Shown: piece by piece, positions 2,641 to 25,129 of the stretch
Layout of the letters: each line of letters opens with the position of its first letter
Numbering within the stretch: position 1 is the stretch's first letter
DNA from: Malacoraja senta
Lineage: Eukaryota
NCBI GenBank assembly: GCA_038087875.1
Contig: CM075977.1
Span: 84,506,001 to 84,570,000, forward strand
Direction: 5' to 3'
Length of the DNA stretch: 64,000 bases
The notes under the pieces: generated by a model
Told to the model about the DNA's origin: nothing
Seen by the model: the letters and a program-made list of their open reading frames with translations, nothing else
Database searches by the model: none
Translations under genes and position numbers: made by a program

Positions 2641-3039
2641 TATGTGGACAGATAAAGGGAGTTAATGTTTCAGGGTGAAGACCTTTCAACACAAACTTCT
2701 GATGGCAGCTCACACATCTAAAACATTAACTGACGTGACTGCAGTTTCTTTTGCTTTTGTGATGAAGCCTGGAGTACAAGGAATCTACAGAAATAGTTCA
2801 AAGCCTTCAAGAGTCCTGATCCTCTGATGTGCCTGCTGTTCCATGATGCCATCAATCAGGCCAATCAAGAAAAATAGCTTAAGAACATTTGTAAAGAAAA
2901 CCTAAAATCAGAGGTTTCAGAACCAATATCATGCGTAATGCTCAAAATGGCATCTTTTGATGAGGTGGGAATGCTGCTCTAACAGTGTTGTCCAAGATAT
3001 CTACACCTCCACTCATAATCCCATGCTCATTCTCTGCAG

Positions 3040-3212
3040 GGAAGTCGCTCAGGAGGTGGACAACAAGCTCCAACTGTTCAAAGAAAACCGGAGGAAGAAG
3101 AAAGACCGTAAAATAAAGAAGCGGATGAGGAAGGGGGATAGTTGCAGCCTGCCTGGCCTCACCTGCTTCACACACAATAATGAGCACTGGCAGACACCGC
3201 CCTACTGGAACT
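3040..3212 (+). CDS. SULF1: SULF1 exon, [57 protein letters not shown]
   Basis: Acceptor tctctgcag ends at 3039 and donor gtaagc starts at 3213. It carries the basic cluster and the [15 protein letters not shown] motif typical of SULF1/2. Confidence 0.96.
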
Positions 3213-5962: not shown

Positions 5963-6105
5963 ACACAAAATGCTGGCGTAACGTCTTCAGTCTGAAGAAG
6001 GGTCGTGGATCCTTCTCTCCAGAGATGCTGTCTGTCCTGCTGAGTTACTCCAGCATTTTGTATCTATCTTCGATGTAAACCAACATCTGCAGTTCCTTCC
6101 CATGC
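5963..6105. mobile_element. Short Penelope-derived hairpin element with 14-bp TSD
   Basis: TSD aaggatgtggaggg at 5949-5962 and 6106-6119. Confidence 0.8.
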
Positions 6106-6230
6106 AAGGATGTGGAGGGTCGATATATTTCACCTATTTTCTGCTTTGTTCACTTACCAGTTGGAATGCATTCAGAAATAATGCGTTCTTCAGAGAATAA
6201 CATGACAAACACTGTGCTCTCTCATTACAG

Positions 6231-6373
6231 TGGGTTCTTTCTGTGCATGTACAAGTTCTAACAATAACACGTATTGGTGTTTGCGGACCATCAATGAGAC
6301 TCACAACATCCTATTCTGTGAATTTGCCACCGGCTTTCTTGAATATTTCGACATGAACAATGATCCATATCAA
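6231..6373 (+). CDS. SULF1: SULF1 exon, [48 protein letters not shown]
   Basis: Acceptor ctcattacag and donor gtaagg; highly conserved C-terminal sulfatase segment; phase 1 in, phase 0 out. Confidence 0.97.
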
Positions 6374-7718
6374 GTAAGGAGATTTTATTTTTGTTATCAA
6401 CAATTAAAAATTGTATTAATAATAAGACAATGCAGTTGATGGAAGCCATTGATTGTGTTTATTACTTATAATACCTAGATTTATAGTCCTGATTGTTCCA
6501 TTGCTTTAAGAGAAGACATGAGGGAAGGTGACATTTGCAGCTAACAGTTATTTTGGCAATGAACGTGCCCTAAATTATATTTAATATATCAACAACTTGA
6601 TGGTGCCTAAACACAGTTCTAAGCATCTCATGCAATGGTTGTAGATAGTGGAAAGGGACACCAAAGGGATGGTTAAGAACTCTTGTCATCCATAAAAGTT
6701 AAGGCATGTAGTAGGTTTTTGGACTGGGGCAGAAAATACCTGGTGGAGCAGTAACCATAGAACCTGCAGCTGCTTGAAGGGGTAAATACAACACTGGGAG
6801 AGAAGCGGGGAGTGCAAGTGGGGAAAGACCAGGGAAGTATCTTTAAGCATAAGCAGCATTCATGTGTGTGCTTTTTAAACTGTGATTCTACTGGTTGATC
6901 ATGTGGCACACTAACATTGCAGTAATGTCACATAATCACAGACAGTCTGAAATGTTCAGTCTGCATCAGAACTTCAACGTGTTGAATGTAGTAATATTCT
7001 GCCTAACTAATTAACCATTACTGCTTTGTATGTGTGTCTCAGTGCATTCTTGAGGGTCTTTAAAATTTACACAGAGGATGGTGGTCCATGTGGAATTATT
7101 GAAGAACATTGATAGGTCTCACTGGGCAACTTTCATGCTGTAGCATAAAACTGATTTTTAGCAGTGTTTTCATGCAATCACTTGCATGACAGCTCTTTGG
7201 TCCAAAGCCTTTGCATGTACCGACTAAGTGTACAGCTTAGGAAACCGTAAGGAAAGTGCCATGTTCCGCCATGTCACCATTGTGAGGAAGAACAACATGG
7301 CTGCCTTGGCTGGTTATATTAGGAGCATGCTGTGCTTGTATGCACAGTGCTGCACAATGGGCAGCAGGTACAATTGCCAATCAATGCAAAGATGGGCAGA
7401 ACATGACAGATGAGGAACAAAATCTGTTCCATTGTCATTATAACGAGTTGTCGCGTGAGCAGGCTGGAGCACTCAGTTCATTACTAATTTCTGAGAGGCA
7501 AACGGACATCCAGATAATGAAAATAATTTAGAGAAGAGCTATTATGAACAGAGCACTTCAAAACTAAGGGCCATTGCCAGGAACAAGCCCTTAGGTCAGC
7601 CTCACTCACCTACAGCATGTACAATAATGGGGCATAAACTTACTGCTCAGCGTACTAGAAAATTGTCACTCCCCTTTTTATAAAAGTGTCTGGCTACAAT
7701 ATAAAAAGGATTAGAAGC

Positions 7719-8844: not shown

Positions 8845-9479
8845 AAAAAGGATTAGAAGCATCTGATTATGACTTCAAATGTTCCAACAAATTTTATTTT
8901 GCTAACCATAGGTTACTGTTGTTATCCCAAACAAAGCAAGTAAACAGTTTTCTTGCAATGGTTGGTTACTCCTGACTATTACATACCTCATGCCTAATGC
9001 TATCCGATCCTATCCGAAACGTCGCCCATTCCTTCTCTCCAGAGATGCTGCCTCACCCGCTGAGTTACTCCAGCATTTTGTGTCCGGCTTTGGTTCTAAA
9101 ATGTCAGTTTTCTGCAGTTAAATGAAATAATTACTGAGTATTCATATGCATATGGTATGAATTTTGGCTACATACGTTTCTCTCAAAATAATTGGTGTCG
9201 TTGCTCTGTGACCCACCTGAAGTACCCCTGCTCATGTGGCAACTCATTATAGTGATAATGGAACAGATTTTGTTCCTCATCTGTCAAATTCTGCCCATCG
9301 TTCAATATCTGTCCATCGAGATAAAGTACACCCCCCTCCCACCCACCCCGCTCTCATAAAGATAAACACAACCATCCTTGGTTCTGGCATGGTATTCATG
9401 ACAATATTGTAATGTGTCTCATTCTTGCAGCCCCTGGTGAAAAGGGAAACTGAATTCTGTTTTGGTTTTCTGGTTTCAG

Positions 9480-9603
9480 CTGACAAATACAATTCACATG
9501 GTTGACCGGGAAATACTTAATCAGTTGCACATACAGCTAATGGAATTAAGAAGTTGCCAAGGACACAAGCAATGCACTCCACGGACCAAGGGGGCAGAAA
9601 CAG
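9480..9603 (+). CDS. SULF1: SULF1 exon, [41 protein letters not shown](G/E); 124 bp, ends in phase 1
   Basis: Acceptor tggtttcag and donor gtaaca; contains the [16 protein letters not shown] motif. Not shown in the ORF track; translated by hand. Confidence 0.95.
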
Positions 9604-10640
9604 GTAACACTTGTAATTCACAGATAGCACACTGATTTGTTCTAAGCTCCCTTCACAGGGAGCCTTCACCTCGCAGTGTGAAATTAATCATAAAACTAAA
9701 TTAATTCCTGGTGTTGTCCTCATATGTCAATTTTCCTGAATGGTATCTTTGCATCAGTGAAATTTAATTAATCCCCTCGTTTTTCCTCATTTTTACCAGA
9801 CAAAATCCTCATGGGAATCTGAAATATTTCTAATGGACTAAAACACTGCAGCACACTTTATTCAAAAGCCCCATAAAGATTATATTTTGACAAAGGTGAT
9901 CCTATCTTGAGAGTCCAATGTAGAACACAATGTCACATGGAACTTGACAGAACAGAACACAATTGGACACACACGATTACTTGTTTTTTTAAACCTGCTG
10001 GTCCACTTTATGTTTTCCTGTCAGATATAAAAAATTACACATTTTCTGCTTTCATTTTCAAAAATATTTAATTCTTGCTGTACATCTCAGTATCTAAATG
10101 TTGATAGTTATTAACAGTGGGAAAAGTATAATTACAGACATTTAACTGCAAGGGAGCAGTCATCTAAATGTCACTTTTTAAATCAGTTAAAAGAACACAG
10201 AAGCTTTCGATTGACATTGACACTTTTGATTTGGGATAATTCATGAAAGCCTTTGTTTTTTGCCCTGAAGCAGCCGGCAAATCCAGACTAATAATCCCAA
10301 TGTTCAGTTTGTATTTTCTATGATTGCAGAGCCTTGAAATCAGATTGATTTTAAAAAAATAAGTGGTCAACGTATTTTCTGCAACTAATTTAATGAAGAA
10401 TTTCATTAAATTCATTTAGCTCTCCTTTTCAACAAGAATGTGTCATATTTTTAAATTGCCCAAGTGTGTAGGCGAATGATAGAAACTGGCTTTTGTTGGT
10501 TGGGGTTTGTTGAAAATGCGAGCAAATACAATGGGATTCATGTAGGATTACTGTAAAAGGGTGATTGACGATCAACGTGGAATCAGTGAGCCGAAATGGG
10601 TTTCTCTCCATGACTCTTGTGGAAATTATATAAAGTGTAA

Positions 10641-11387
10641 AGGGCCTGTCCCACTAACGTGACTTTTCAGCGACTGTCTTCGACCTTCAAGCTCGAGGGC
10701 ACTCACCTGAAAAACCTCGAGCTGGATCGACCGTCAGCAATGAAACCGCGAGCTGGATCGACCAACCGCACACACACGCACAAACACATCGCAAAGGCGG
10801 GGGCCAGGGAAAGCGGGGGAGCGCTGTCTGAAATTCACATGGTGCAAAGCCAAGGTGACACCCGCGATGAACAGGAAGGTAAAGGATGGCTGGCACAGTT
10901 ACTGTAAGTCCTTTAGAGAACGTGGAGAGGGGAGAGAAGGGGGGAGAAGGGGGAGAAGGGGGGGAGAAGGAATGGAGACACTTTTTAAGAATCCAGACAA
11001 CTTATAATAAAGTTTAGCGGGCATTTAAATTACCGGTCGGTTTTCCTTGGTTCTGAAAACTCCAATGAGCCAATTAAAATGCTCGGTCAGCAAAGGAGAT
11101 TGCCTACGGTTGCCCTCGACTGCCTATAACTACATAGCGACCCCACTCCACTGCACTACGAGTTCAAAAGAACAATGCCGAACAATTTTTACTTGCGGAA
11201 AAATTTTCGGCATGCTGTAAAATTTTCCTCGACCAAACTGAGGCCGCGAGTAGGAGGAAACTTCCCTCGAGCATGAAGGAGAATTACAGTGACCTCCTAG
11301 GACCACGTGTCGACCATGCTGTGAGTTTGAGTCGAGCGCAAATTCGTCTAAACTCGCAAATTAGGTTGCCGCAGTGGGACAGGCCCT
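10641..11387. mobile_element. Non-autonomous PIF/Harbinger DNA transposon (MITE)
   Basis: Perfect 15-bp TIRs agggcctgtcccact (10641-10655) and agtgggacaggccct (11373-11387), TAA on both flanks; CpG-rich interior. Confidence 0.88.
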
Positions 11388-11840
11388 TAAGAAAGTGAAA
11401 CAGTGCAATAATATATACAGTTATTTGGTAGCATCAAGCTCACCCTATTGTTGAAACAGGTTAAAATGAGGCACACATGTGATGTCAAGGAGGTAATTTT
11501 GACATTTGATCACACAAGATTGGTAATGGAAAACTGCTCACCCATTTTATAGCTTTCCCAATGTTTATTTTTATTGAAGCCACTGGGAATATGGTCAGGA
11601 GTGATTGATACGAGCTGCCGTTTTTCTATCAGCCCTTTTACACATTCATTCAAAGTCAAAATTTACCAACATAGTCTTGTATATGATTTCACTGCTGATA
11701 AAGTATATACAACAGCTTATTTTCTAAACTGATCTAGTTTACAATGAAACAAGGTGGCAGTTGTTCTCCCTTTTAGTTTGGATATACAAGCCATGTTCTC
11801 CTGGTTATTTCTCATGTCAAAGGTTACTTTTCCTTTCTAT

Positions 11841-12130
11841 TTTAACCACAATCCATTTTTCCTCAGGTAATGCATGGACAGATACAATGTGAATAATTTT
11901 ACTGTTCTAAAATCATTAACATAAATTACTCTTGTATTTTCCTAATCAGGAAATAAAGATGGAGGAAGCTTTGATCAGCACAGGTATCCATACTTTTTAT
12001 TCTCTTCAACAACTTTCATTCCGTCTAATTGCATGAGCTGGCCCATTGAAGCTTCGTTTACTTTGATTGTATGTTCCATCCAGCATTCTTTGATGCATGA
12101 TAGCTCATTCTTTAACAAATAACAACTAAT
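11841..12130 (+). promoter_or_regulatory. Cluster of splicing-regulatory motifs around the SULF1 microexon (RBFOX TGCATG x3, QKI-type ACTAAT/CTAAT)
   Basis: TGCATG at 11871, 12030 and 12094; ACTAAT at 12125 (also 12490); CTAAT inside the acceptor at 11942. Confidence 0.6.
11950..11983 (+). CDS. SULF1: SULF1 34-nt penultimate microexon, (G)NKDGGSFDQH(R); frame-shifting cassette
   Basis: Acceptor ttttcctaatcag and donor gtatcc; resembles SULF1 GNKDGGSYDLHR; phase 1 in, phase 2 out. Confidence 0.92.
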
Positions 12131-13536
12131 TCTTATTTCAGACCATCTGTTTTTATTCAACTCTACTCTTTGGGATCCACAAGAGTCCTAATAATTCGCT
12201 TTCGTTGTGATCCCAGCTCAGTTGTTGCTCCTTGAAGGTGAAAGTAATTTCAGAGTGAAGAGAAATGGACTGATTCCTACCATTCCCTCCATCTCTTTCA
12301 AACACATATGTCCATATAAATGTACGCACACACATTTTACACTTGCACGCTAACACAGTCCCATGATTGCTTGAAAACTGAACCGTGTTCATATGTTGTA
12401 CCCCATATTGGAACCAAATCACCTAGAGAATATTAACAAACTTTAAGCACAAATTATGTTCAAAGCAAATCCAAATCTGTGGTCTTTACACTAATTTAAA
12501 AACCATTCAGTTTGAAACCATGAAATTGTCCCTGGTCCTGGATGGAATATTATTATTGTTCAAATTTACCAATGTCGAAGATAAGTTTTGAGTATGAATT
12601 AGACTTGTGGTTCTTTTCTAAGTTACTTTTCCAACCTTTTATCGCTTTGCAACTGGTAAGCTTCACATTCACTTTCTATCTGGCAGATAGCTTCTAAACT
12701 CTAATATGAATTTACTAAATTGCATTAACCAATAAAAGCACAAACTTCCACTCGTGGCGTAGAATTTGACAGAATATCTATCGGCAGTACCTACACAATA
12801 CTTGATGGTGCTGCTCAGGGAAGAGAGGAAGTGTTTCCACTGACTACTCAACCACATGTCACATGTTCCTCTCCCAGTTTCCAGAGTATGGAATCAGAAA
12901 CAGCTTAACTAACCCGCACTCTAAGCTCCAAAATTGTGTGTAGCACAGTGTAGCACAAGGGGAAGAAAATAAGGGGGGAAACTATTAAATAGACAACTAG
13001 AAATTCCAGTAATGTGGTCCTTATACTCAATGACACTTGGAGGAAGTGAGTGCAAATAGGTGGAAATAATAAAGCATTTAATAAATTAATTAAATTATCC
13101 TATCATATACTGCAAAGAATCACACTACAATAGGTATATTTTATTTGAGATAATCTAACATATAAATATATTTATGTAGACTCAGAAAATGAATAATGTA
13201 CCAAGATAACCTTAATCTTAGAATCTAATTGTTTGATCTTTGCCTCTTTTTATTCCTGCTACCTGGTTGCCAGGCTACAGCAGCATCGAAAGTGGCCAAA
13301 GTTGAGGAGGCCGAGCTTCAAGTCCTTGTGAGTGAACAAAAGCTATTCTTTAGTAACCAGTAGGGAAGCGATCACTGTCGCAACTTAACTCTTGAGTTTT
13401 TAATTCACGTGCATCCCCAAATCAATGTTGTAGTTGTGTAACACTTCTATTTCCACTTCTTCTTCCTGAAAATGTACCAGCAGCAAAATATTTATTATTT
13501 CCTTATAATTGCCGAAGAACCACTCAGAAGTGATGG

Positions 13537-13742
13537 TAGACAAAAATGCTGGAGAAACTCAGCGGGTGAGGCAGCATCTATGGAGCGAAGGAAAGAGGCA
13601 ACCCTTCTTCTAACCCGAAACTGGGTTTCGACCCGAAACGTTGCCTATTTCCTTCGCTCCATAGATGCTGCCTCACCCGCTGAGTTTCTCCAGCATTTTT
13701 GTCTACCTTCGATTTTTCCAGCATCTGCAGTTCCTTCTTAAA
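13537..13742. mobile_element. Penelope-derived near-perfect hairpin element with ~16-bp TSD
   Basis: Arms gtagacaaaaatgctggagaaactcagcgggtgaggcagcatctatggagcgaaggaaa and its reverse complement. TSD cactcagaagtga(t/c)gg at 13521-13536 and 13743-13758. Confidence 0.85.
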
Positions 13743-14379
13743 CACTCAGAAGTGACGGTGGCTGTGATTTTGCAGCTGTGGTTGCAAGGAATTGATTCCT
13801 TCTGGTATTATTGGGGTATAAAACAATGACATCTCTGTTAACACACACATCAATGGTATGCTTTCAGGGTGCTTTCAAATGGACATTGCTGTGGCAACGC
13901 ATAAAAGATTTGGTGGTGTTGTGTCTCTTACTACTGTTTTATCATTCTCAAAGAATGATAAGGTGGGATGAGCGAGAACATGGCTCCTGTTGGAGAAATG
14001 GGATGACTGTAGAGAAGGATGTGCTAGTTCAGTCCTGGACTTCTTCAAGTCTTCCCACAGAACAATCTAATAACTGGAGACAAAAGCCTTTTAATGAGGA
14101 GTTTGAGTTTAGTTAGTTGTCACATGTACCTAGGTACAGTGAAAAGCTCTTGAAGCGTGCTAACCAGTCCAATGACTAATGGCTATTCTTCAATATCCCC
14201 CTGCCATTTATTGCAAAATAACCATGGCAAAACTCTTTATTATCTTTCCTTGCTGACTTAATTTGGGGAATAGAATGCATTAGTATGTTGCAAAGCATCC
14301 TTAGCTAATAAATTAGGTATGAGTATGAGTATTGAGCAGGTGACAACTAAAATAAATTTACAGACAACAAGCAGTCAGC

Positions 14380-15285
14380 ACCAGGCTCGCACCAGGGTCT
14401 CTGCCATACCCCACAACACTGCTCTCTCTCCCCATCCCCCCACTCACAACAAGGGCAGAGTCCCCCTAGTCCTCACCTTTCACCCCACCAGCCGTCACAT
14501 ACAACAAGTGATCCTCCGTCAGTTTCGCCACCTCCAACGTGACCCCACCACTCGCCACATCTTCCCATCTCCCCCCATGTCTGCCTTCTGCAAAGACCGC
14601 TCCCTCCGTAACTCCCTTGTCAATTCTTCCCTTCCCTCCCATACCACCCTCTCCCCTGGTACTTTCCCTTGCAACTGCAAGAGATGCAACACTTGTCCCT
14701 TCACCTCCCCCCTCGACTCCATTCAAGGACCCAAGCAGTCGTTCCAGGTGTGACAGAGGTTCACCTGCATCTCCTCCAACCTCATCTATTGCATCCGCTG
14801 CTCTAGATGCCAGCTGATCTACATCGGTGAGACCAAGCGGAGGCTTGGCGATCGTTTCGCCGAACACCTCCGGTCGGTCCGCAATAACCAACTTGACCTC
14901 CCGGTTTCTCAGCACTTCAACTCCCCCTCCCATTCCGTATCTGACCTCTCTGTCCTGGGTCTCCTCCATGGCCACAGCGAGCAACACCGTAAATTGGAGG
15001 AAATGCACCTCATATTCCGCTTGGGCAGTCTACATCCTGGGGGCTTGAACATTGAATTCTCCCAATTCTGCTAGCCCTTGCTGTCCCCTCCCCTTCATCA
15101 GCCCTCTGGTTGTCTCCTCCCCTCCCCCAGCCCTCGGGCTCCTCCTCCGCCTTTTTCCTTTTTTCCTTTCTTCTCCCCACCCCCTATCAGTCTGAAGAAG
15201 GGTTTCGGCCCGAAACTTTGCCTATTTCCTTCGCTCCATAGATGCTGCTGCACCCGCTGAGTTTCTCCAGCATTTTTGTGTACCT
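14380..15285 (+). mobile_element. Penelope-like element 3' fragment: GIY-YIG endonuclease plus terminal repeat with hammerhead-like core
   Basis: Translation gives RVPLVLTFHP...CNCKRCNTC...NLIYCIRCSRCQLIYIGETKRRLGDRFAEH...HFNSPSH. There is an in-frame TGA at 14751, and ctgaagaagggtttcggcccgaaa at ~15192. Confidence 0.9.
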
Positions 15286-15966
15286 ACCAGTCCTTAGCAC
15301 ACATCAGTTTTGCTCTTTGCTGTTATATCTGCTAGTTTCACATGTATTGATCAAGTTATTGTAGACTAATGGTCATGTCCACATACACGTGTACTGTTTA
15401 CCTCCTGATTACAGTAGGGGCCTGTTCCTGTAAACTATTTGTGACCTGGACAGTTTGCAAGTTGGAAATGCATCGAGAACCATTCCCACATGGTAGACAA
15501 TGTCTGCAGTCCCAAAATAGCTGGGAGGGACCTGACCCATATTTCGCCATTGTCCTGATATTACACTGCCCTGATATGACCATTCAAGATGTTAAAGTTG
15601 TTTCCCCTGAGGTATTAGCAGAGGTATTAGCCCATTAGTTCCAATTTGGCATCCCACAGAATAATTTCATATATTAATATGTTAGGATTATTGTAATTTG
15701 TAAATGGATTCTGCCCACTCTTCTCACCAACCTGACCTCAAGGACCCTCGTAGCTCTGTCTGAGTTACATGGATTCAAGTTTCACTCCAGGCCCTGTAGC
15801 AAAGAATCCAGAACACATCTGCCTTACCAACAGGATGAGATGAGATATGTGCTATTGAGTAAATGTAAAATATTTCTGAAAACCACCTGAAAGAAAATCT
15901 GAGTAGTGAGTTTGTTGGCCATGCCTTAAACTGAAGGTGTACTGAAACATGCAATCCGGTTATTTA

Positions 15967-16277
15967 GGGCAGCACAGTGGTGCAGCAGTAGAGCTGTTGC
16001 CTCACAGTGCCAGAGACCCAGGTTCGATCCTGACCTCGGGTGCTGTTTGTGAGGCGTTTGTATGTTCTCCCTGTGACTGCATGGGTTTCTTCGGATGCTC
16101 TGTTTTCCTCCCATATTCCTAAGACGTGCAGGTCTGTAGGTTAATTGGCTTCTGTACATTGCCATGAGTGCGTACGGCATAGAACTAGTGAATGGGTGAT
16201 CTAAGGTCAGTGTGGACTCGGTGGGGCAAAGGGCCTGTTTCCACACTGTATTTCTAAACTAAACTAAACTAAACTAA
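15967..16277 (+). mobile_element. Full-length tRNA-derived V-SINE (HE1-like) with CR1-type 3' end and (ctaaa)n tail
   Basis: A-box tggtgcagcagtag, B-box ggttcgatcc, V-domain, then gggcctgtttcc...ctaaactaaact. Confidence 0.85.
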
Positions 16278-17234
16278 TTCCATTAATGCTTATGGGTGTT
16301 TGAGCTTGTTCTTATAAATTCCTGTGAGATTCCCTGTGGGGTGAAGTTTGTGATGTTCTGCAGGTCTGTGCATTGTATAAGAAACCTTGTAAGCACACAA
16401 GACATTTCATGTATTCTCTTTCATATCAGAACATTCCAGATGCACAGTCCCTAATTGTTCATCTGGGGATCATTCACTTGGATGGTTGTCCATGATTTGA
16501 ATAATCACAGGCAGTCCATCCTCATTTTGCCAAGATCTCCTTGACAGCCCCACCAACAATCTGCAGTTTCAAAACATATTGGTCTATTTTAGCAGCAACA
16601 TTTAGGAGTTAAATGAAAATAATTGACAGACCTGCCCATATCCTTCCTGCATTTCCAATATCATTATCTATCCTTTCACAGTATGTTCATCTTCCTGTCG
16701 GCACTCAGTGGAAAGATAGCATTGATCGTTGTTTAATGGAGATTGTACAGTACATACAGCAGATGAACCAAAGTGATCAGTTCTGGGCTTGTCTATTGCA
16801 CTGGTGACAATGCTAGAGCATAAATCACTTCATGTCAGTAAATAACAGCTCATTCTGCCAATGGATTGACATCATTCTCATGCATTGTCCATTTCACTAA
16901 TTAAACTTTTCTTTAGCATGTAGGTTCATCGAGTTGCTGCTACTGCATGGCTTTTCTGTTTATCCTGCACATTTAACGATGAGTCGTCTTTCGCTGCCTT
17001 TTCCCTAAGGAGAAACCATTTCATCCAGCTAGAAGATCATTTGCCGCCTCACCTCGTGTTAATTTTCTTCAGATTTGCTTTGATTTTTAGCTCTAACTTT
17101 CTCACGGGCTGCGCAGTTTATCTAACAGGATCTCACAGATTGCCATATACTTCATTTCTACTTCCCTGGCTAGTAACATGGTTTTCTTAGATTGCCATTG
17201 TGATATATTATATTTATAACAGATATTGTAAGTA

Positions 17235-17735
17235 TTACATGGATAGGACCGCTTTGGAGGGATATGGACCAAATGTGGGAAGGTGGGACTAGTGTAGCTG
17301 GGGCAAGTTGGGCCGAAGGACCTGTTTCCACACTATCGCTGTATGACTCTATGACTCTGCTATACAAATAGTGGTTGAAGAAATTGCATGGGATTAATTT
17401 TGAATTTTGGGCAGGAGTAAGGATATTTATTCATGGGCACCCATTTGTGCATTTGAGACAATCTCATTCAATCCCGGTGGCTAGTTGCTGGGCTTTGCCG
17501 AACATCCTAGTGCAGTTTGGTAGATTCAAAGTTGAATCAAGGCAGCCCTCCGGGAGGTAGATCACCTTGGGTTGTAGGGATGGGAAGAGGCAGTGATCAA
17601 AGAACAGCAACAACCTATGAGGAGAAGCCAGGAGATGGGGTTGAGGTGGAAAATTACATCAGCCATGATCGAATGGCAGAGCAGACTCGATTAGCCGAAT
17701 GGCCTAATCCTGCTCCTATGTCTTATGGTCTTATT
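17235..17735 (+). mobile_element. Two short CR1 3'-end fragments (~17235-17357 and ~17615-17735)
   Basis: gagggatatggaccaaatg...gggccgaaggacctgtttcc...(ctatgact)n; and atcagccatgatcgaatggcagagcagactcg...cctgctcctatgtcttatgg. Confidence 0.7.
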
Positions 17736-18066
17736 GTAATGAGCTATGGAAGAGCAGTTCTATTTTGCAGTCCACAAAAGTAATTTGATACCTATCTTCA
17801 CTAACCTCATCAATTCGCAACTTTGGGCTTTGGTTAACCCTCTCCAAGTGAAGTGCCACACCATATTTGGCCACATTACAAGACCATTACTACTCTATTA
17901 AGGCAAGGCAGCAGCAATTAATATAGTTCCCAATTAGTTTAAAATATGAGGGGAGCTTTCCAATGTAATTTTTTTTGAGAATGTATTTTTTTGATAATTA
18001 ATGTAACTTAAAAGCTGTGCATTAAACTGGTATTGTGAGATCCCTCCTATCAACTCCGTTTTTTAT

Positions 18067-19024
18067 GGCGGACTCACAAAAATTAATATCATATTTATAT
18101 AATAGTATTCTTAACAGAGAATTGCCATCAACAGAGGCAATTAGAGAAGACTGGGAAAAAGAATTAATGACAAAAATTTCTAAAGAAACATGGGAAAGGT
18201 ATTTGATATATATACATAAATGTTCTATTAACGCTAGACACAATTTAATTCAATTTAAAATATTACATAGATTATATAATTCAAAAGTTAGGTTGAATAC
18301 ATTTTATTCAAATATTTCTCCCATCTGTGATAAATGTCTTTCTCAAAACGCCAATATCACACATTCATTCGTTTCTTGCACAAAACCTCATGGATTTTGG
18401 TTTGATATATTTGATATATTCACTAGTTTATTTAAGATAAAAATGGAACATTGAAATTATTATCTTTTGAGTAATAGATGGGAACAAATTAAATATATCC
18501 CAAATTTCATTTTTTAATTATGGTTTAATAACAGCAAAAAAACTCATACTTAAATTTTGGAAAAATGCTACTATGCCAACACTCAAATGTGGATTGGTAA
18601 TATGTTGGAAACTGCCCACTTGGAAGAAATGAGACTCCTCCTAATAGACAAACAAGACCAATTCTTAACGAGTTGGGCTCCATTTATTGACCTTTTGGAT
18701 TCATGTGGTGCAACAGTATCGTAAAATTAAAAATTCTGGATTTGGGCGAATAATGATCAAGAATATAAAAAAGCATTGACTTGTGGCGAGGGAGAATCTC
18801 CTTTCTGCTTCACTTTCTTACTTATTTATTTTCTTTACTTCACATTCACTAGACTTTTCTTTACTCTTTACTACTTCTTTCTTTCTCATTTCTTTCTAAA
18901 AAAAAAGGGAAGTTGTACAAAGAATGTTATAATAACTTTGGGAACCTGTAAAAAGGTACCATCAAAATGTAATGTACGTACTTCTAATAAATAAAATATT
19001 TAAAAAATAAAAAATAAAAAAAAC
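18067..19024 (+). mobile_element. L1-clade LINE 3' fragment, same family as 7719-8844, not inverted
   Basis: ORF 18035-18454 is near-identical in protein to the other copy; aataaa plus A-rich tail; probable TSD ctcc(g/a)ttttttat at 18054-18066 and 19025-19037. Confidence 0.88.
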
Positions 19025-20559
19025 CTCCATTTTTTATTTCCATTGCATTCAAAGTGCTGGATTTGATTTCTGGACATTGGTTGCAATGGAAATGAAAAAT
19101 GGAGTTGAGAAGAAGAATCCCACAATGCCAGTTCAATGCCCTTTTTAAAAAAAAATTAATGAAGGCTCGACATGTTATCTACACAGTTTATAATTTTAAT
19201 GCTGAAACAAATGCTGCAAAGCAGCTACCTGACCTCTTCTTGACCTCGCTCTCTTTTCATGGTTTAAGAAGAGATCGGCTATGGTTTGCCTCAACTCTGA
19301 TTTTGTCTCTATTTTCCTAAAAGCACAGTTTGTCTCTTTAGCCTGTAATGATATTTTTTTTATCTTGGTCAAGCTTGACAATATGTCTTCTGATTTCAGT
19401 TTTGTTTATCAGGTATGGTTTTGACATTGTTGTTTCTATAAAATCTGGTAATAAATACATGTCAAAAAGAATTCTAATGGAAATGAAAATCAAGGAATTT
19501 CCATAAAAATTATAAAGCTTATTTAAACTCCACTGGTGAAAAATCAAATGCATTCTTTTCCCCAAATCAGGCAGTTCAATCCCTGTGTTTCCCTGGCACA
19601 GTCTGATCCAATACACTCCCAGCCAGTGCTCCATTCTACCCCTGTAAACATAAGCTAATCCCAATTTCCCCAACCTGTGACATAACCTGCAGCAAGCCCA
19701 TTTGTTCCATCACCTGCACTCACCGACCTACACCAGCTCCCAGTTATGCAACACGATGATTTTAAAATCCTTATCCTTCGTTTCGCTCCCTACAAACCCT
19801 TGCCTCTTCCTTCTCTCTCTTAACTCATTCATCCATTTCTGGAAACCTGCATCAGTATTACGGTATGTGTCAGGATGTCAAATCCTGTGACAAATATGGG
19901 TTGTTTTATTGCATTCTAGGTACTATACAAACACAAGTTCTTGTGGTTGATAAAGCTCTTGTGGAGTGATTGTTAACAGCAAGAGGAAAGCTTCAACTTC
20001 CAGATTGACCACTCTATATACATTCAAAGGAAAGGATGAGATTCCTGATAGATCCCTACATTATATTCCTTTATGCCAAAGATTTGAGAAAGTAAACAAA
20101 GTAAAATGCTGCAGATGTTGGAAATAGTCAAAGTTTGTGAAGAAGGAAACAAAGTTAAGTTTGTATATATGTGATCTTTCGCTGGAATTGAAGACAGCAG
20201 CGATTAACATCTTATAAACCAACAAGGAGCTGGGGAAATGGTGCAGGCAGATGTGAGGTGGTTTGGAGAGTGTTGAGGAAGGCAGTGTGAGCATGGAGTG
20301 ATCTGTGCTTGGACAGTGAGCAAGAGTGATTGAATCATAATATGGCAGAAAAAAACTGTTTGTGGCAAAGAAGATGCAAACAAGACAATCTTGGGGATGA
20401 GCTAAATAGAATCCCAGTTTGGGGATAGAATAGAGCTGTACAAGTAACATACGTTTTGCAGAGATCAAGTATAAAGACAATTGAGGTAATTTATTTAGCT
20501 TTCCTGACATTCAACCCAGACATAGACTTTGAATGCTAATCAAAATGAAACTCTGGGTG

Positions 20560-20832
20560 GTGGAATCGAGAACTAGACGACATAGGTGAGAGGGAAAATA
20601 TTTAATTGGAACCTGAGGAACAACTTTCTCACACAGAGAGTGGAAGGTATATGGAGCAAGCTGTCAGAGGGAGTTGTTGAGGTAGGTACAATAATAGCAC
20701 TTAAAAGATATTTGAACAGGTACATGGTTGGGAAGCTTTAGAGGGATATGGGCAAAAAGTAGGCAAATGAGACTAGTTTCGATAGGGTATATTGGTTGGC
20801 ATGGACGGGTTGGGCCATATGTATGACTCTAG
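20560..20832 (+). mobile_element. Degenerate CR1 3' fragment
   Basis: gaatcgagaactaga...acacagagagtgg...gagggatatggg...gggttgggcc. Confidence 0.7.
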
Positions 20833-22728
20833 GAATGATGTCTAGGTCCTGCTGCATGCAGGCATTGACTGATTAAGCTGCTGAGGAATTGCCGATGAAA
20901 TTGAACTTTGTAGAATTGTTAGTGAACTTCCACACATCTGACCTTACGATAAAAAGAAAGTCATTGATGGAGTAATGAATGATCCTTGGGCTTTGGATAC
21001 CTCCCTGAGGAACTCCTGCAGTGATATGCTGAGGTTGGGATGCCCTTCAACAATCATAACCATCAACCTTGGTGCAGGTACAACTCCCTTTCATCCCCAG
21101 TCCGTTAAACCAGAATTCCTTGATGCCACATTTAGTCAAGTGTTGTCTTAATGTTAAAGACAATCACTGTCACCTCACATCTGGAATTCAGCTCTTTGAT
21201 TTACATTTTGACCAGGCAGTGGTAAGGTCTTTATAAAGTGCTTCTGGCAAAGTGCAGAAGGTTATTGGTGATGAAGTGCCGCTTGATAGCACTGTAAAGA
21301 ACACCTTCCATCCTCTTGTTGGTGGTTGACAGTTGACTAGGCGGTTAGTTCAGCTTTTCTATTGGATTTGTTTTGCTTTTAGAAAAACGGGATATTCCTG
21401 AGTAATTTTTTTGTTGGGTAGAGGAGGGTTAGTAATTGTACTGAAATCGTTTGACTCGAGATGTTGTTAACACTAAATTGCACTGGGATGTTATATGATC
21501 CAAAATCCTATGCTGTGTCCAGTACTCTCAACTATTTCTTAATGAAGATTATAATTTCCTAATATCACGTGGCATGATCAAGTTGACTGGGTAATGTGAT
21601 CTGTGGTTGTGAGGTCTCCTGAGGAAGCTGAGATGGATTATTCAAGCATCTACTTGCCAATTCTGTCTGAACGTGCAAGCTATTCCTCCATCGTTGTCTT
21701 TGACACTCACTTGCTGGCCCCCATTTCTTCGGGATGGAGATATTCTTGAAGCCTCCTCTCCCCCACCATTAACCTTTAATTGTGCTCTACCTTACACCAC
21801 CAGAAGTGACAGGTCTGCAGAGCTTTGGCCTGATCCATTGGTTATAACTTCACTTGACTCTCTCTAATGCATGCTATTTCTGCTGCTTAACAAGCATGCA
21901 TTCCAATCCCACCAGGTTGCTCCTGTCTCCACATTTAAGGGAAAGACTGAAACCAAATATTCAGAAGAGTAGAATGCAAAGGTGTTAGAGCTACTGATTG
22001 GGGAAGGACATGCTGTTACCCATATCTTAAGCAATGCCATTGACAACATGAGGATAATGGGTATTACAATCTGGAAGTAGATGCTAAATGTCAATTCTGA
22101 GATATTGTATGTATTAAATAAGACATTTGTGTTAAACTGGAGATGTTTTTTGTTGAACTAAACTTTCTGTCAAATATGTATTAAACAGGGACAAGGAAAT
22201 AAATAAAATAAAGTAAAGGTGTATATATATTTATCGACATGTGTGAGCAGAGGCATCATTGCATGTGTGAGCAAGAAATAATATGGATATTATCCTAAAA
22301 TAATATGATCATTAATGTCGTTTTTTTTGTAAAACGTATCTGATTTCACGGTAATCTAATATTAAGGGCAGTAATAAAGTGGATTTTTTTTTTAATAACA
22401 ACGTGGTTGCTGTAAAATCAAAATGGTCACATATTTGACATTTCCTTTACAGAATCTGCTTTTGACATTTGTGACTTTGTTTTATTAATCATTTCTCTCT
22501 GAGCATTCTTCTAGTGTCTCATGTTGGGGTGTGTGCTTTCAATCTGCTTCTGCTGTGCAACTTTGTTAATGGCTTTTTGTAGTGAGATGTGCTGTCTCTA
22601 ATTTTGCTTTGAATAACCAGCTGATAGTGGAGCAGATGCATGTCTGCACACAAGCACAGTGCTTCAGCAACTATGGATGGTCGACGTACGTGAAAATAAA
22701 CTATTTCAATCTTTGTTTCTGCCTGCAG

Positions 22729-22759
22729 AGGACAGCTATGGGATGGATGGGAAGGTTAA
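22729..22759 (+). CDS. SULF1: SULF1 terminal exon, canonical frame (R)GQLWDGWEG*
   Basis: Acceptor tttctgcctgcag ends at 22728; canonical SULF1 C-terminus GQLWDGWEG; TAA at 22757-22759. Confidence 0.95.
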
Positions 22760-23630
22760 TCCACTTAAACTGCCAAACTTAACGGAAAATATCAACTGGG
22801 GAGAACTTGAAAATTTGTACAGTGTGGATGAAAGCTTGTTTGAACACAGGCATAATTATAGCCTTAGCCTTGGTGACTGGACTAATTACTGGAAGGATGT
22901 AGATAGAATGTTTGCACTGCTTAAGACTTTTTCTGGACACATTAAAACTTCTGAGGCCATTGCGCTAAATAAGGGCGGGACTCTTGATTTGAGCATTGAC
23001 ACCACAGCACTGGACATGGCACCAACTCCATTGCCTATTTTTGGAAATGTGTTCTCTACTGAGCCCGAGGATGAATCTAGTGGCACGACTGTATGGGAGG
23101 CAACAGAAGCACAACCTGTTGTACTTGCTGACTCTGATGGTACAAATATGAGCACAACCATTACAAGTGGTGAGCGTCCACAGGAGGAAGCAATAAACAA
23201 CAATCATATACCCGATAAGCATTTATCAAACACTGAATGGTGGCAACATAATCGGACAAAACAGTTGACAAAGGAATGGGGGGAGCTGGAATATGACCAC
23301 GGTTTCAGTGGAAATGGACTGGTGGAAATGGAAACCAGAAATAGCTTCTTTCTTCAGCAAAGTGCCACATTTCCGTCACCCAGCATCCAGAATGAAGTGG
23401 AGGAGAAGGAGGACATATTTGAAGGCAAAACATATCTTCCTGTTGGCTCTATGAGCCACCTTTATTCCAGAGCTTTCACTGTTCCTCGAGAAACCAGCGA
23501 CAACGAGAAATTGGCAAACGTCCAGCTTCAGGAAGAGCCTGAGAACAGTGGCGAAGGAGGACAAGAGAGCTTCAGTACAGAAGGCAGTGCCTTGCCCCCT
23601 CAATCCTTTCATCAACTCACAGCCCATTGA
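22729..23630 (+). CDS. SULF1: SULF1 terminal exon, alternative frame: 300-aa C-terminal tail EDSYGMDGKVNPLKLP...HQLTAH*, used if the 34-nt exon is skipped
   Basis: Longest ORF in the window (part of track ORF 22659-23630), non-repetitive. The phase-1 G at 9603 plus AG at 22729-22730 gives GAG (Glu) exactly in this frame. AATAAA follows the stop. Confidence 0.78.
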
Positions 23631-23663
23631 TTATTTATTTGGAGGTCAACCATAATCTTTCAT

Positions 23664-23669
23664 AATAAA
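23664..23669 (+). terminator. Candidate SULF1 polyadenylation signal AATAAA (a further ATTAAA lies at 24957-24962)
   Basis: Hexamer about 34 nt after the long-frame stop, followed by U-rich sequence; no transcript evidence. Confidence 0.4.
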
Positions 23670-25129
23670 AGTTTTATTTGATGAGGTCAAAACAAAGCAC
23701 ATTCCATTTCCATAGGAGGTATATTTCATAGCAGCCTGGCGATTGTCAGAATATCACTCACATTATTAATATCATCCGGAATGAGGGAACAAGCTGATAT
23801 TCTTCTTAGCAATGTAATATTTTGCAGTCATCTGTATAACTATGTATTTAAATATTCAGTGTTGTGTCTGGAATAGACATGTCCTAAAGTCCTGTGAAAC
23901 ATTCTTGAAACCTCCATTGGCTGTTCAGTATGTACTTGCTTTAGCTTGTACTTTATTTTTGCCAGGATCTGTGACCAGTCCATTCCAAAAAGCTCTCAAC
24001 ATCCACCTTTTACATGACAGATGTTGAGTACTGTCAGTGTTTTCCTCTCAGTAAATATATTGCACTTTCAAAATTCTTCACAAAACATTTACAAATATGG
24101 ATGTATTAACAGTGCAGAGCATTGGTTCAGTGAGTTTCCAGCTGGTGATTTCAGTTGTAATGTGTAAAGGAAATCTTATTCTGTGTTCTTCATGCTGTAA
24201 CTTGCTCTCACTTATCAATTGTTTCACCTAAAAATATTTAGCATTGTCCTTATTTTTTGTCTTAGTGTCTTTTTTTTTTTTACCTTGGCCTGTATTGAAT
24301 TTCTTCTTTAATGAAGGAACAATATGAAGCCAATGTATTGTATTTTGTTTCAAGTTATAACTTGTTCTCATTATTTCCCACAGAATCTTAAAGGGGTATA
24401 ATCTTTGTGAAAAATTTGTGCTGATCTGTCTTTTTTAGAAACAAAAATGAGGAGGAACAGCGGTCACTTTTACCTAGACAGCGTTGAGTGCAACGGTCAT
24501 AATGATGCACTTTCAATGAGATTTACATTACCATGTGACAGATGGATTACTAGAAAGTTTTGTGTAATTTCCATGAATATGGTGCTCCTTTAAGATTGAA
24601 ACGTAGGCAAAATTGCTTACAATGTACTTGATGTGTAACTGTTTTGATAAATCTGTTTATAGTTTGAATGGCTCGTTTAGCACGATCCTTAGATTCAGTT
24701 GCATGAAGTTTATATAATCTGTGTAGGTTTTTACAGTGGTCACAGATGTTTCTTTTTTTAAATGGTGGTAATGCCACACATTACCAAGCCAATGTAATCA
24801 ATGTGCATAGGTTGGAGACATCAGACTAGTGAAATTCATGCTATGTTCTTTAAAAGATAAAATTTGTAGCAGTGTTTTATTTTTGTCTGTAATTTACACT
24901 GGCCATATTATTTACTGGTAATTACCTGTTGCTTGTTTCTGGATAAACATGCAGTGATTAAACCACAATGCTTAAACTTGCAGTGAGAATGTAAGTGTTA
25001 TTATTGATACAGAGTACCTTCACCAACCTCAAAATTGAATTAAAACACCATGAAGTTAACAACAGTGTATGTTTGATTATAGTTGCCCTGTCATAGCTAA
25101 AGACTTGGTTACTATGTGCAAGAAGATAT

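Follow-up and report, generated by a model that had tools for sequence, protein, structure and literature searches.

Which of its two possible C-terminal ends does the extracellular sulfatase SULF1 receive, and do the motifs around one short exon help to choose between them? This question arises from a window of skate DNA, by which we mean the whole stretch of 64 kb analysed here, where a 34-nt penultimate exon is surrounded by copies of UGCAUG. A preliminary description of the window had proposed that these copies, together with QKI-type motifs, make the exon a regulated splicing switch. We examined the exon in transcripts and gene models, the motifs in the window and the flanking introns in five further species. 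The exon proved to be alternative and the RBFOX-type motifs conserved, whereas the QKI sites turned out to be weak.

Gene identity and exon layout

The frame of 299 aa that is opened by skipping the 34-nt exon was compared with 1.8 billion proteins in a profile-free search. It matched a protein of 1120 aa with 98% identity over residues 822-1120, namely the "extracellular sulfatase Sulf-1 isoform X2" of the thorny skate Amblyraja radiata, and the sequence of this isoform carries the skipped junction itself (...PRTKAAET/EDSYGMDGK). Therefore, as judged from this match, the window contains the 3' end of the SULF1 gene of a close skate relative.

Regarding the exon layout (Table 1), six spliced RNA contigs from six runs of related skates were 96-99% identical to the window and aligned with it in blocks at around 1427-1504, 3034-3212, 6231-6373, 9480-9603, 11950-11983 and from 22729 onward. 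At the antepenultimate exon, whose translation gives 41 residues, the contigs align over 9476-9607 and the next block is the 34-nt exon, with the junctions 9603 to 11950 and 11983 to 22729 found in the six contigs. Since all of them contain 11950-11983, this segment is a genuine exon, which the dominant assembled transcript contains in six out of six runs. It is bounded by cctaatcag and gtatcc and lies between the first and the second TGCATG; its length is the same in the six species that we aligned, where 26 of its 34 columns are invariant. The orthologous exons of mouse Sulf1 also measure 124 nt and then 34 nt (PMC7392665).

Table 1. Features of the 3' end of SULF1 in the window, and positions of TGCATG relative to the 34-nt exon in six species (negative values, before the acceptor; positive values, after the donor)
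Feature	Position	Strand	Remarks
SULF1 antepenultimate coding exon	9480..9603	+	124 nt, ends in phase 1, donor gtaaca; from sequence reading
Pyrimidine-rich run ending in AG, 3' splice site look-alike	11853..11866	+	just upstream of the first TGCATG
Upstream UGCAUG	11871..11876	+	79 nt before the acceptor
Likely branch point TTAAC	11916..11920	+	branch A some 31 nt upstream of the exon; inferred by yUnAy match
Polypyrimidine tract and acceptor	11930..11949	+	tcttgtattttcctaatcag; TATTTTCCTA invariant in six species
SULF1 penultimate coding exon	11950..11983	+	34 nt, encodes (G)NKDGGSFDQH(R); from translation
Weak 5' splice site GTATCC	11984..11989	+	only +1 to +3 agree with the consensus; T, C, C at +4 to +6
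Downstream UGCAUG no. 1	12030..12035	+	+47 from the donor; invariant in six species
Downstream UGCAUG no. 2	12094..12099	+	+111 from the donor; invariant in six species
Skate-specific composite resembling a QKI site	12113..12130	+	UAAC 12113-16, UAAC 12120-23, ACUAAU 12125-30; +130 to +147
ACTAAT	12490..12495	+	outside the conserved block
Second cassette exon	13274..13327	+	54 nt, in frame, LQQHRKWPKLRRPSFKS + L
Last exon	22729..24851	+	contigs align over 22726-24851; acceptor 22728/22729; the rest beyond the stops is 3' UTR
TGCATG, skate	-79, +47, +111		
TGCATG, gar	-76, +42, +99		
TGCATG, milkfish	-86, +43, +102		
TGCATG, frog	+55, +121		none upstream (TGCAAG)
TGCATG, bird	-79, +47, +114		
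TGCATG, kangaroo rat	-76, +44, +114		

The models A. radiata X3 and S. canicula X4 contain the second cassette exon. It was absent from all six skate RNA contigs and no GCATG was found near it.

Two ends of the protein

When the exon is included (9603, then 11950-11983, then 22729), the protein receives its canonical end, ...GNKDGGSFDQHRGQLWDGWEG, and the last exon is read as RGQLWDGWEG up to the stop codon at 22757-22759. Skipping (9603 directly to 22729) changes the frame by +1: the codons are read from 22731 as EDSYGMDGKVN... and the frame stays open for 299 codons, to 23627, with its stop at 23628-23630. The 34 nt are not a multiple of three and their skipping opens a frame that extends beyond the normal stop, which is what defines a frameshifting penultimate exon.

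Both outcomes are represented in gene models. The junction ...AET/EDSYGMDGK is found in the X1 and X2 models of A. radiata and in a Rhinoraja model. Furthermore, RefSeq holds long-tail models of around 1050-1250 aa, usually named isoform X1, for dozens of species over a very wide vertebrate range: among the fishes, rays, sharks, sturgeons, gar, bichir, teleosts including zebrafish, and the coelacanth; among the tetrapods, frogs, salamanders, a caecilian, turtles, a gharial, lizards, snakes, more than 30 birds, marsupials and placentals including primates. Short canonical models occur in the same species as the long ones, for instance X3 of A. radiata and X2 to X7 of sharks (863-885 aa in several of them). 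The long form had been described as a "hidden isoform" of this locus. Actually it is not hidden, being annotated in RefSeq across vertebrates (A. radiata Sulf-1 X1/X2 and dozens more), and the mouse event has been listed (PMC7392665).

Regarding RNA, a placental-mammal contig of 4251 nt encodes an uninterrupted long-tail protein of 1115 aa, and this contig can only be a spliced, exon-skipped mRNA. In mouse, the Sulf1 event 124@34@last-exon is marked both as annotated and as supported by RNA-seq, with a PSI below 90 in at least one tissue, and one proteotypic frameshift peptide is reported from brain lysate; primers for RT-PCR of the event are also given (Preussner et al. 2020, PMC7392665). The skipped-frame tail has been kept open from sharks to mammals and teleosts, and such deep conservation supports its being translated. 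Near its beginning the tail has a conserved region, NW..LE.LYSV..S...

Thus the 34-nt exon is truly alternative in vertebrates, both outcomes having been found as RNA or as gene models, and the preliminary description was right to see a frame-switching exon between the 124-nt exon and the last one. In skates, skipping is represented by gene models, all six assembled transcripts including the exon, and in the six skate samples it is at most a minor form.

The UGCAUG cluster in the window

The three TGCATG stand on the forward strand at 11871, upstream of the exon, and at 12030 and 12094, downstream of it, just as first reported. They had also been said to be far denser than chance would allow, and this is correct in one sense only. 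The Poisson probability of at least three TGCATG in a fixed span of 334 nt is 4e-4, and none of 1000 first-order Markov simulations of the window placed three of them at the location of the exon; nevertheless, an equally tight triple appeared somewhere in the 64 kb in 96 of the 1000 simulations (9.6%). The hexamer is not enriched over the window as a whole (54 on both strands vs 57 expected). No other triple in the window is as tight as this one, which spans 223 nt; the runner-up spans 769 nt. Taken in the window alone it is only moderately unusual and, since around 10% of the simulations contain a triple as tight, the cluster is significant only because it is adjacent to the exon. The copies lie on the sense strand within a few hundred nucleotides of the exon, an arrangement that is one criterion for RBFOX-regulated exons. 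The flanks were confirmed to be free of repeats, direct or inverted, between 11500 and 12700.

Conservation of the motifs and splice sites

The orthologous genomic regions came from the frog Ascaphus truei, a bird (a genomic contig; the tail protein it encodes falls into one 90%-identity cluster with a Ficedula albicollis protein), the spotted gar, a kangaroo rat and the milkfish. Both downstream TGCATG are invariant in the six species, at +42 to +55 and at +99 to +121, and the upstream one is found in five of the six at -76 to -86, the frog having lost it. At each locus TGCATG is locally more frequent than in the background of the locus itself (P = 7e-4 to 1e-2). In the six-species alignment of the downstream intron from +7 to +167 only 22.7% of the columns are invariant, and the sole invariant runs of at least 6 nt are the two TGCATG sites. 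When the invariant flags were shuffled, two such runs were obtained in 8e-5 of the trials with six species and in 3e-4 with five. The conserved block ends at about +260.

An alignment of the flanking introns across species had been suggested as one way to check the motifs, and for TGCATG it gives positional conservation in six gnathostome lineages. Judging from these alignments, the motifs have been conserved position by position over roughly 450 million years, as would be expected of (U)GCAUG elements that are functional. The cluster is therefore well supported as a deeply conserved cis-element of the kind that RBFOX proteins bind. Because the copies of bony fish, frog, bird and rodent stand in almost the same positions as those of the skate, the three UGCAUG are very likely real splicing signals that help to choose between the short and the long tail.

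Regarding the splice sites, the donor CAG/gtatcc had been noted as non-consensus, and it is so well beyond the skate: GTATCC is also found in gar, milkfish, frog and bird, and GTATTC in the kangaroo rat. At the putative branch point, the TAA at 11917-11919 is invariant in alignments A2 and A3, with bird and rodent reading CTAAC. The CTAAT that had been pointed out inside the acceptor is present (cctaatcag at 11941-11949, directly before the G at 11950); nevertheless it is shared with gar and milkfish only, since the tetrapods read CCTATATCAG there. The splice-site look-alike at 11853-11866 is aligned as YYYTTTAG in all six species and, if it were used as an acceptor, the skate frame would stop after 8 codons according to our reading of the sequence.

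The trout gene that is a SULF2-like paralogue has a homologous 34-nt exon (13132-13165 of its locus) with a GTATCT donor and no GCATG within 200 nt. Therefore the TGCATG module is not obligatory for such exons, and we make no claim that it predates the split between SULF1 and SULF2.

In that trout gene a pair of GCATG comes after the neighbouring 54-nt exon instead.

Some other readings of the region were tried and rejected. The conserved block had no Rfam match and no repeats, and the fold of 11860-12150 was no more stable than that of shuffled sequence (z = 0.07), so that it was not taken for a structured RNA or a repeat. SRRM4-dependent microexons carry a UGC element after the branch point and before the acceptor. 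An SRRM4-dependent neural microexon was rejected because there is no TGC in 11920-11949 and the exon has 34 nt; neural microexons measure 3-27 nt as far as PMC7935315 describes them. As for the catshark, the 10 kb lying 5' of the tail stop short of the 34-nt exon, a tblastn match at 6817 was spurious, and the locus was not part of the comparison.

A proposed mechanism

We consider that an RBFOX-type UGCAUG module probably governs the choice between the short and the long tail of SULF1. The exon is short and its weak donor, GUAUCC, is conserved, so that auxiliary signals should be needed for its recognition. The UGCAUG at -79, +47 and +111 could be these signals, together making up an ancient intronic module such as RBFOX1, RBFOX2 and RBFOX3 bind. 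In cells rich in RBFOX, the protein bound to the two downstream sites would promote inclusion and thus the short tail; where RBFOX is low, or where it acts through the upstream site, the exon would be skipped and the long tail produced. A STAR-type (QKI-like) UAAY/ACUAAY element beside the second downstream UGCAUG, which is only loosely conserved, might contribute as well. Which protein binds, in which direction it acts and any tissue specificity are what we infer from the motifs and from the rules known for them.

According to these rules, Fox-1 family proteins repress inclusion from upstream sites and enhance it from downstream ones, and UGCAUG is often found in several conserved copies near tissue-regulated exons (Kuroyanagi, PMC2777236, Fig. 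2 for the position rule). The net direction is uncertain at this exon, because opposite effects are predicted for the single upstream site and for the two downstream ones. Within the library that we searched there was no paper linking SULF1 with RBFOX, QKI or UGCAUG, and Sulf1 was not found in the supplements of two Rbfox2 papers.

Alternative explanations

The UGCAUG sites might be constitutive helpers of a weak exon and not a switch. RBFOX2 would then be present in all the cells that express SULF1, which are largely mesenchymal, and skipping would be low-level noise. The six skate contigs, all of them with the exon, agree with this, and so do most of the tail ORFs in bird, frog and newt transcripts, which start at an ATG inside the 34-nt exon and therefore come from inclusion transcripts. 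Nevertheless, if the tail were never used, one would hardly expect its frame to have stayed open from sharks to mammals and teleosts, as it has. Moreover, in one mammalian RNA assembly the path that was assembled is the skipped form, and in mouse there are both a tissue with a PSI below 90 and a frameshift peptide. For these reasons we regard a purely constitutive role as unlikely.

We give less credit to the idea that the hexamers act without RBFOX, either because AUGCAU/UGCAUG pairing loops out the exon or because a different protein or complex binds them. TGCA is self-complementary and the minimum-energy fold of 11860-12150 does pair the upstream copy with the second downstream copy, but this is the fold whose stability equals that of shuffled sequence. 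In addition, the complementary flanks are not the same in all species (frog and bird have CATGCA after the motif; skate, gar and rodent do not), and the frog has retained both downstream sites after losing their upstream partner. As for another factor, UGCAUG is the textbook RBFOX site (PMC2777236). Such an action of the hexamers is therefore rather improbable.

The RBFOX-type reading has also to be set against QKI, or another STAR protein, as the main regulator in the skate, acting through the ACUAAU at 12125 and 12490 and the CUAAU of the acceptor. A QKI response element consists of an ACUAAY core with a UAAY half-site within 1-20 nt. The composite at 12113-12130, UAAC-N3-UAAC-N1-ACUAAU, has this core and half-site arrangement as a sequence match, its three elements lying within 18 nt, and in the bony vertebrates the same downstream intron retains ACUAAU at +63 to +76 in four of the five species (gar, milkfish, frog and bird; it is missing in skate and rodent) and CUAAC at +115 to +133 in all five. 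On the other hand, the two ACTAAT whose coordinates had been given correctly as 12125 and 12490 are no more frequent than expected by chance, and their positions are not conserved. The window contains 55 ACTAAY vs 68.6 expected, if anything a depletion, and a single one falls within 200 nt of the exon (P = 0.19). The skate sites are away from the conserved ACTAAT position; that at 12490 most likely stands there by chance, given its place beyond the conserved block, and tetrapods have CTATAT in place of the acceptor CTAAT. In bony vertebrates, the conserved ACUAAU and CUAAC are themselves around 50 nt apart, beyond the spacing of a bipartite element.

Furthermore, the skate composite occupies the place of the bony-vertebrate CUAAC, with which it shares only the UAAC column (the TAAC is invariant in the three-species alignment), and it is followed by a pyrimidine tract and then AG at 12140-41. 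This combination of CUAAC, pyrimidine tract and AG, which in the skate covers 12125-12141, might just as well be a branch-point-like element or a decoy 3' splice site. Thus a STAR protein as the main regulator seems very improbable, and a STAR contribution to the choice of the exon, as read from these motifs, is possible but weak.

Lastly, a functionless chance grouping of a common hexamer beside an exon, which the simulations and the lack of window-wide enrichment would allow, is hardly credible since it is already contradicted by the position-specific invariance of the sites in six lineages, in an intron otherwise 77% variable.

Comparison with known systems

An RBFOX-type module at this exon resembles those of fibronectin EIIIB and NMHC-B N30 (PMC2777236), where multiple conserved UGCAUG also flank a short, weakly defined alternative exon. 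The SULF1 module differs from them in that it is a candidate known from its sequence, in that one upstream and two downstream sites coexist, and in that its exon shifts the frame and selects the C-terminus, with no peptide being inserted.

As regards the outcome of the splicing, the closest relatives are the splicing-accessible coding 3' UTRs (Preussner et al. 2020, Genome Biol 21:186). The same event is included there for the orthologous gene, with its 124-nt, 34-nt and last exons, mouse Sulf1 being present in Tables S1 and S2 and in the RT-PCR set, and skipping opens a frame of around 270-300 aa that starts with EDSYGMDGK. However, the tails of this class are described there as mostly proline-rich, disordered and destabilising and often lineage-specific, whereas the SULF1 tail is conserved from sharks to mammals. 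The motif search of those authors in neuronally regulated exons gave Pcbp3- and Mbnl1-like motifs, and RBFOX is not named (PMC7392665).

Variants of SULF1 and SULF2 described by the Dhoot laboratory also arise by alternative splicing, in the same gene, and functional consequences have been proposed for them. They include quail Sulf1B and human variants without exons 6, 7, 8 and 18. Nevertheless, these variants remove exons of the catalytic or hydrophilic domain, and none of them concerns the 34-nt penultimate exon or the long tail.

Implications for SULF1

The tail switch itself was already catalogued; what is new here is a well-conserved splicing module of a familiar class in SULF1, placed on an understudied isoform, although the enzyme itself has been studied a great deal. 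In the library searched we found no functional study of long-tail SULF1, an isoform for which predicted models are widespread and which has been observed in mouse.

By remodelling heparan sulfate, SULF1 tunes Wnt, FGF, VEGF and other signalling, and the roles reported for it in development and in cancer are contradictory. The module may represent an ancestral switch of jawed vertebrates, kept nearly base for base, in which RBFOX-type sites (and, in bony vertebrates, a STAR-type element) set the SULF1 tail cell by cell; we would put this at somewhat less than an even chance. If it were true, the choice would lie between a canonical end of 10 residues and a conserved extension of around 270-300 aa. 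There would then be two regulated proteoforms of a heparan-sulfate editing enzyme, of which much of the conflicting SULF1 literature may reflect only one. Independently of this, the case shows that a frame-switching exon can lead into a coding 3' UTR that is ancient and conserved, while the tails described for this class are mostly young and disordered, and the three conserved hexamers, as candidate regulatory sites, offer a direct handle on the choice of the SULF1 tail.

A separate tail ORF and the annotation of SULF1

In the inclusion transcripts, where 11959-11983 is joined to 22729-23627, the tail frame starts at an ATG within the 34-nt exon (MEEALISTEDSYG...), and therefore gene callers report a separate ORF of 304-308 aa, with an overlap of 44 nt at the stop of SULF1. 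Birds, frogs and newts likewise have a separate tail ORF beginning at an ATG in this exon (MIHTEDNYG...). The ATG, which may be incidental, is there because the KDGG/YD codons are conserved. In the annotation of the skate Rhinoraja longicauda, SULF1 was split over two gene models (proteins P0040 and P0193): the N-terminal model has 416 aa and is labelled 'Sulf-1-like', and the 'uncharacterized protein LOC144593037' (572 aa) corresponds to the C-terminal part of SULF1 plus the long tail.

Additional cassette exons

We found two further cassette exons in SULF1 (see table). The 54-nt exon follows the 34-nt exon and precedes the last one; its homologue in SULF2 is the exon QFQRRKWP...KSL. The gene models X3 of A. 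radiata and X4 of S. canicula include it, and it is absent from all six skate RNA contigs. Its inclusion without the 34-nt exon would lead to a stop after 10 codons. The 75-nt exon is the reason why A. radiata X1 has 1145 aa and X2 has 1120 aa; among the six skate RNA contigs, it is skipped in one, L014.

Features of the SULF1 and SULF2-like loci (window positions unless L010, the trout SULF2-like locus, is given)
Feature	Position	Description
75-nt cassette exon	about 1430-1504	25 aa, SYFSRDKGMRNQGKLKNKNSHLHPF; hydrophilic domain
54-nt cassette exon	13274-13327	in frame; encodes LQQHRKWPKLRRPSFKS(L)
3' splice-site look-alike	11853-11866	pyrimidine tract + AG; about 85-95 nt upstream of 34-nt exon
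3' splice-site look-alike	12125-12141	pyrimidine tract + AG; about +150 downstream of 34-nt exon
Interspersed short repeat	2199-2411, 5982-6197, 8912-9118, 13442-13738, 15056-15361
Transposon fragment, last intron	14754-15071	ORF with GIY-YIG domain
Transposon fragment, last intron	18026-18451	ORF with zf-RVT domain
SULF2-like 34-nt exon	L010 13132-13165
SULF2-like 54-nt exon	L010 14733-14786

Intronic elements

Both 3' splice-site look-alikes are conserved, being common to most of the six species, and are possible decoy sites, distant branch-point regions or PTB-type binding sites. The upstream one directly precedes the upstream TGCATG, and the downstream one comes after a CUAAC-type element.

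The SULF1 introns also contain at least five copies of an interspersed short repeat, in both orientations, whose translations share ...LLSRDAA(S/C)PAELLQHFV...; this is probably a SINE. As for the transposon fragments, the GIY-YIG domain is typical of Penelope-like elements and zf-RVT is found at the reverse-transcriptase end of LINEs.

The tail in SULF2

The trout SULF2-like locus (L010 12717-15305) also has a skip-accessible tail, the start of which (MDWSELEPLYRLDEHAY...LEDWDNF...VDRMFTLL) is similar to that of the SULF1 tail, and TGCATG occurs there at +122 and +183 past the 54-nt exon. This suggests that the long tail predates the SULF1/SULF2 duplication.
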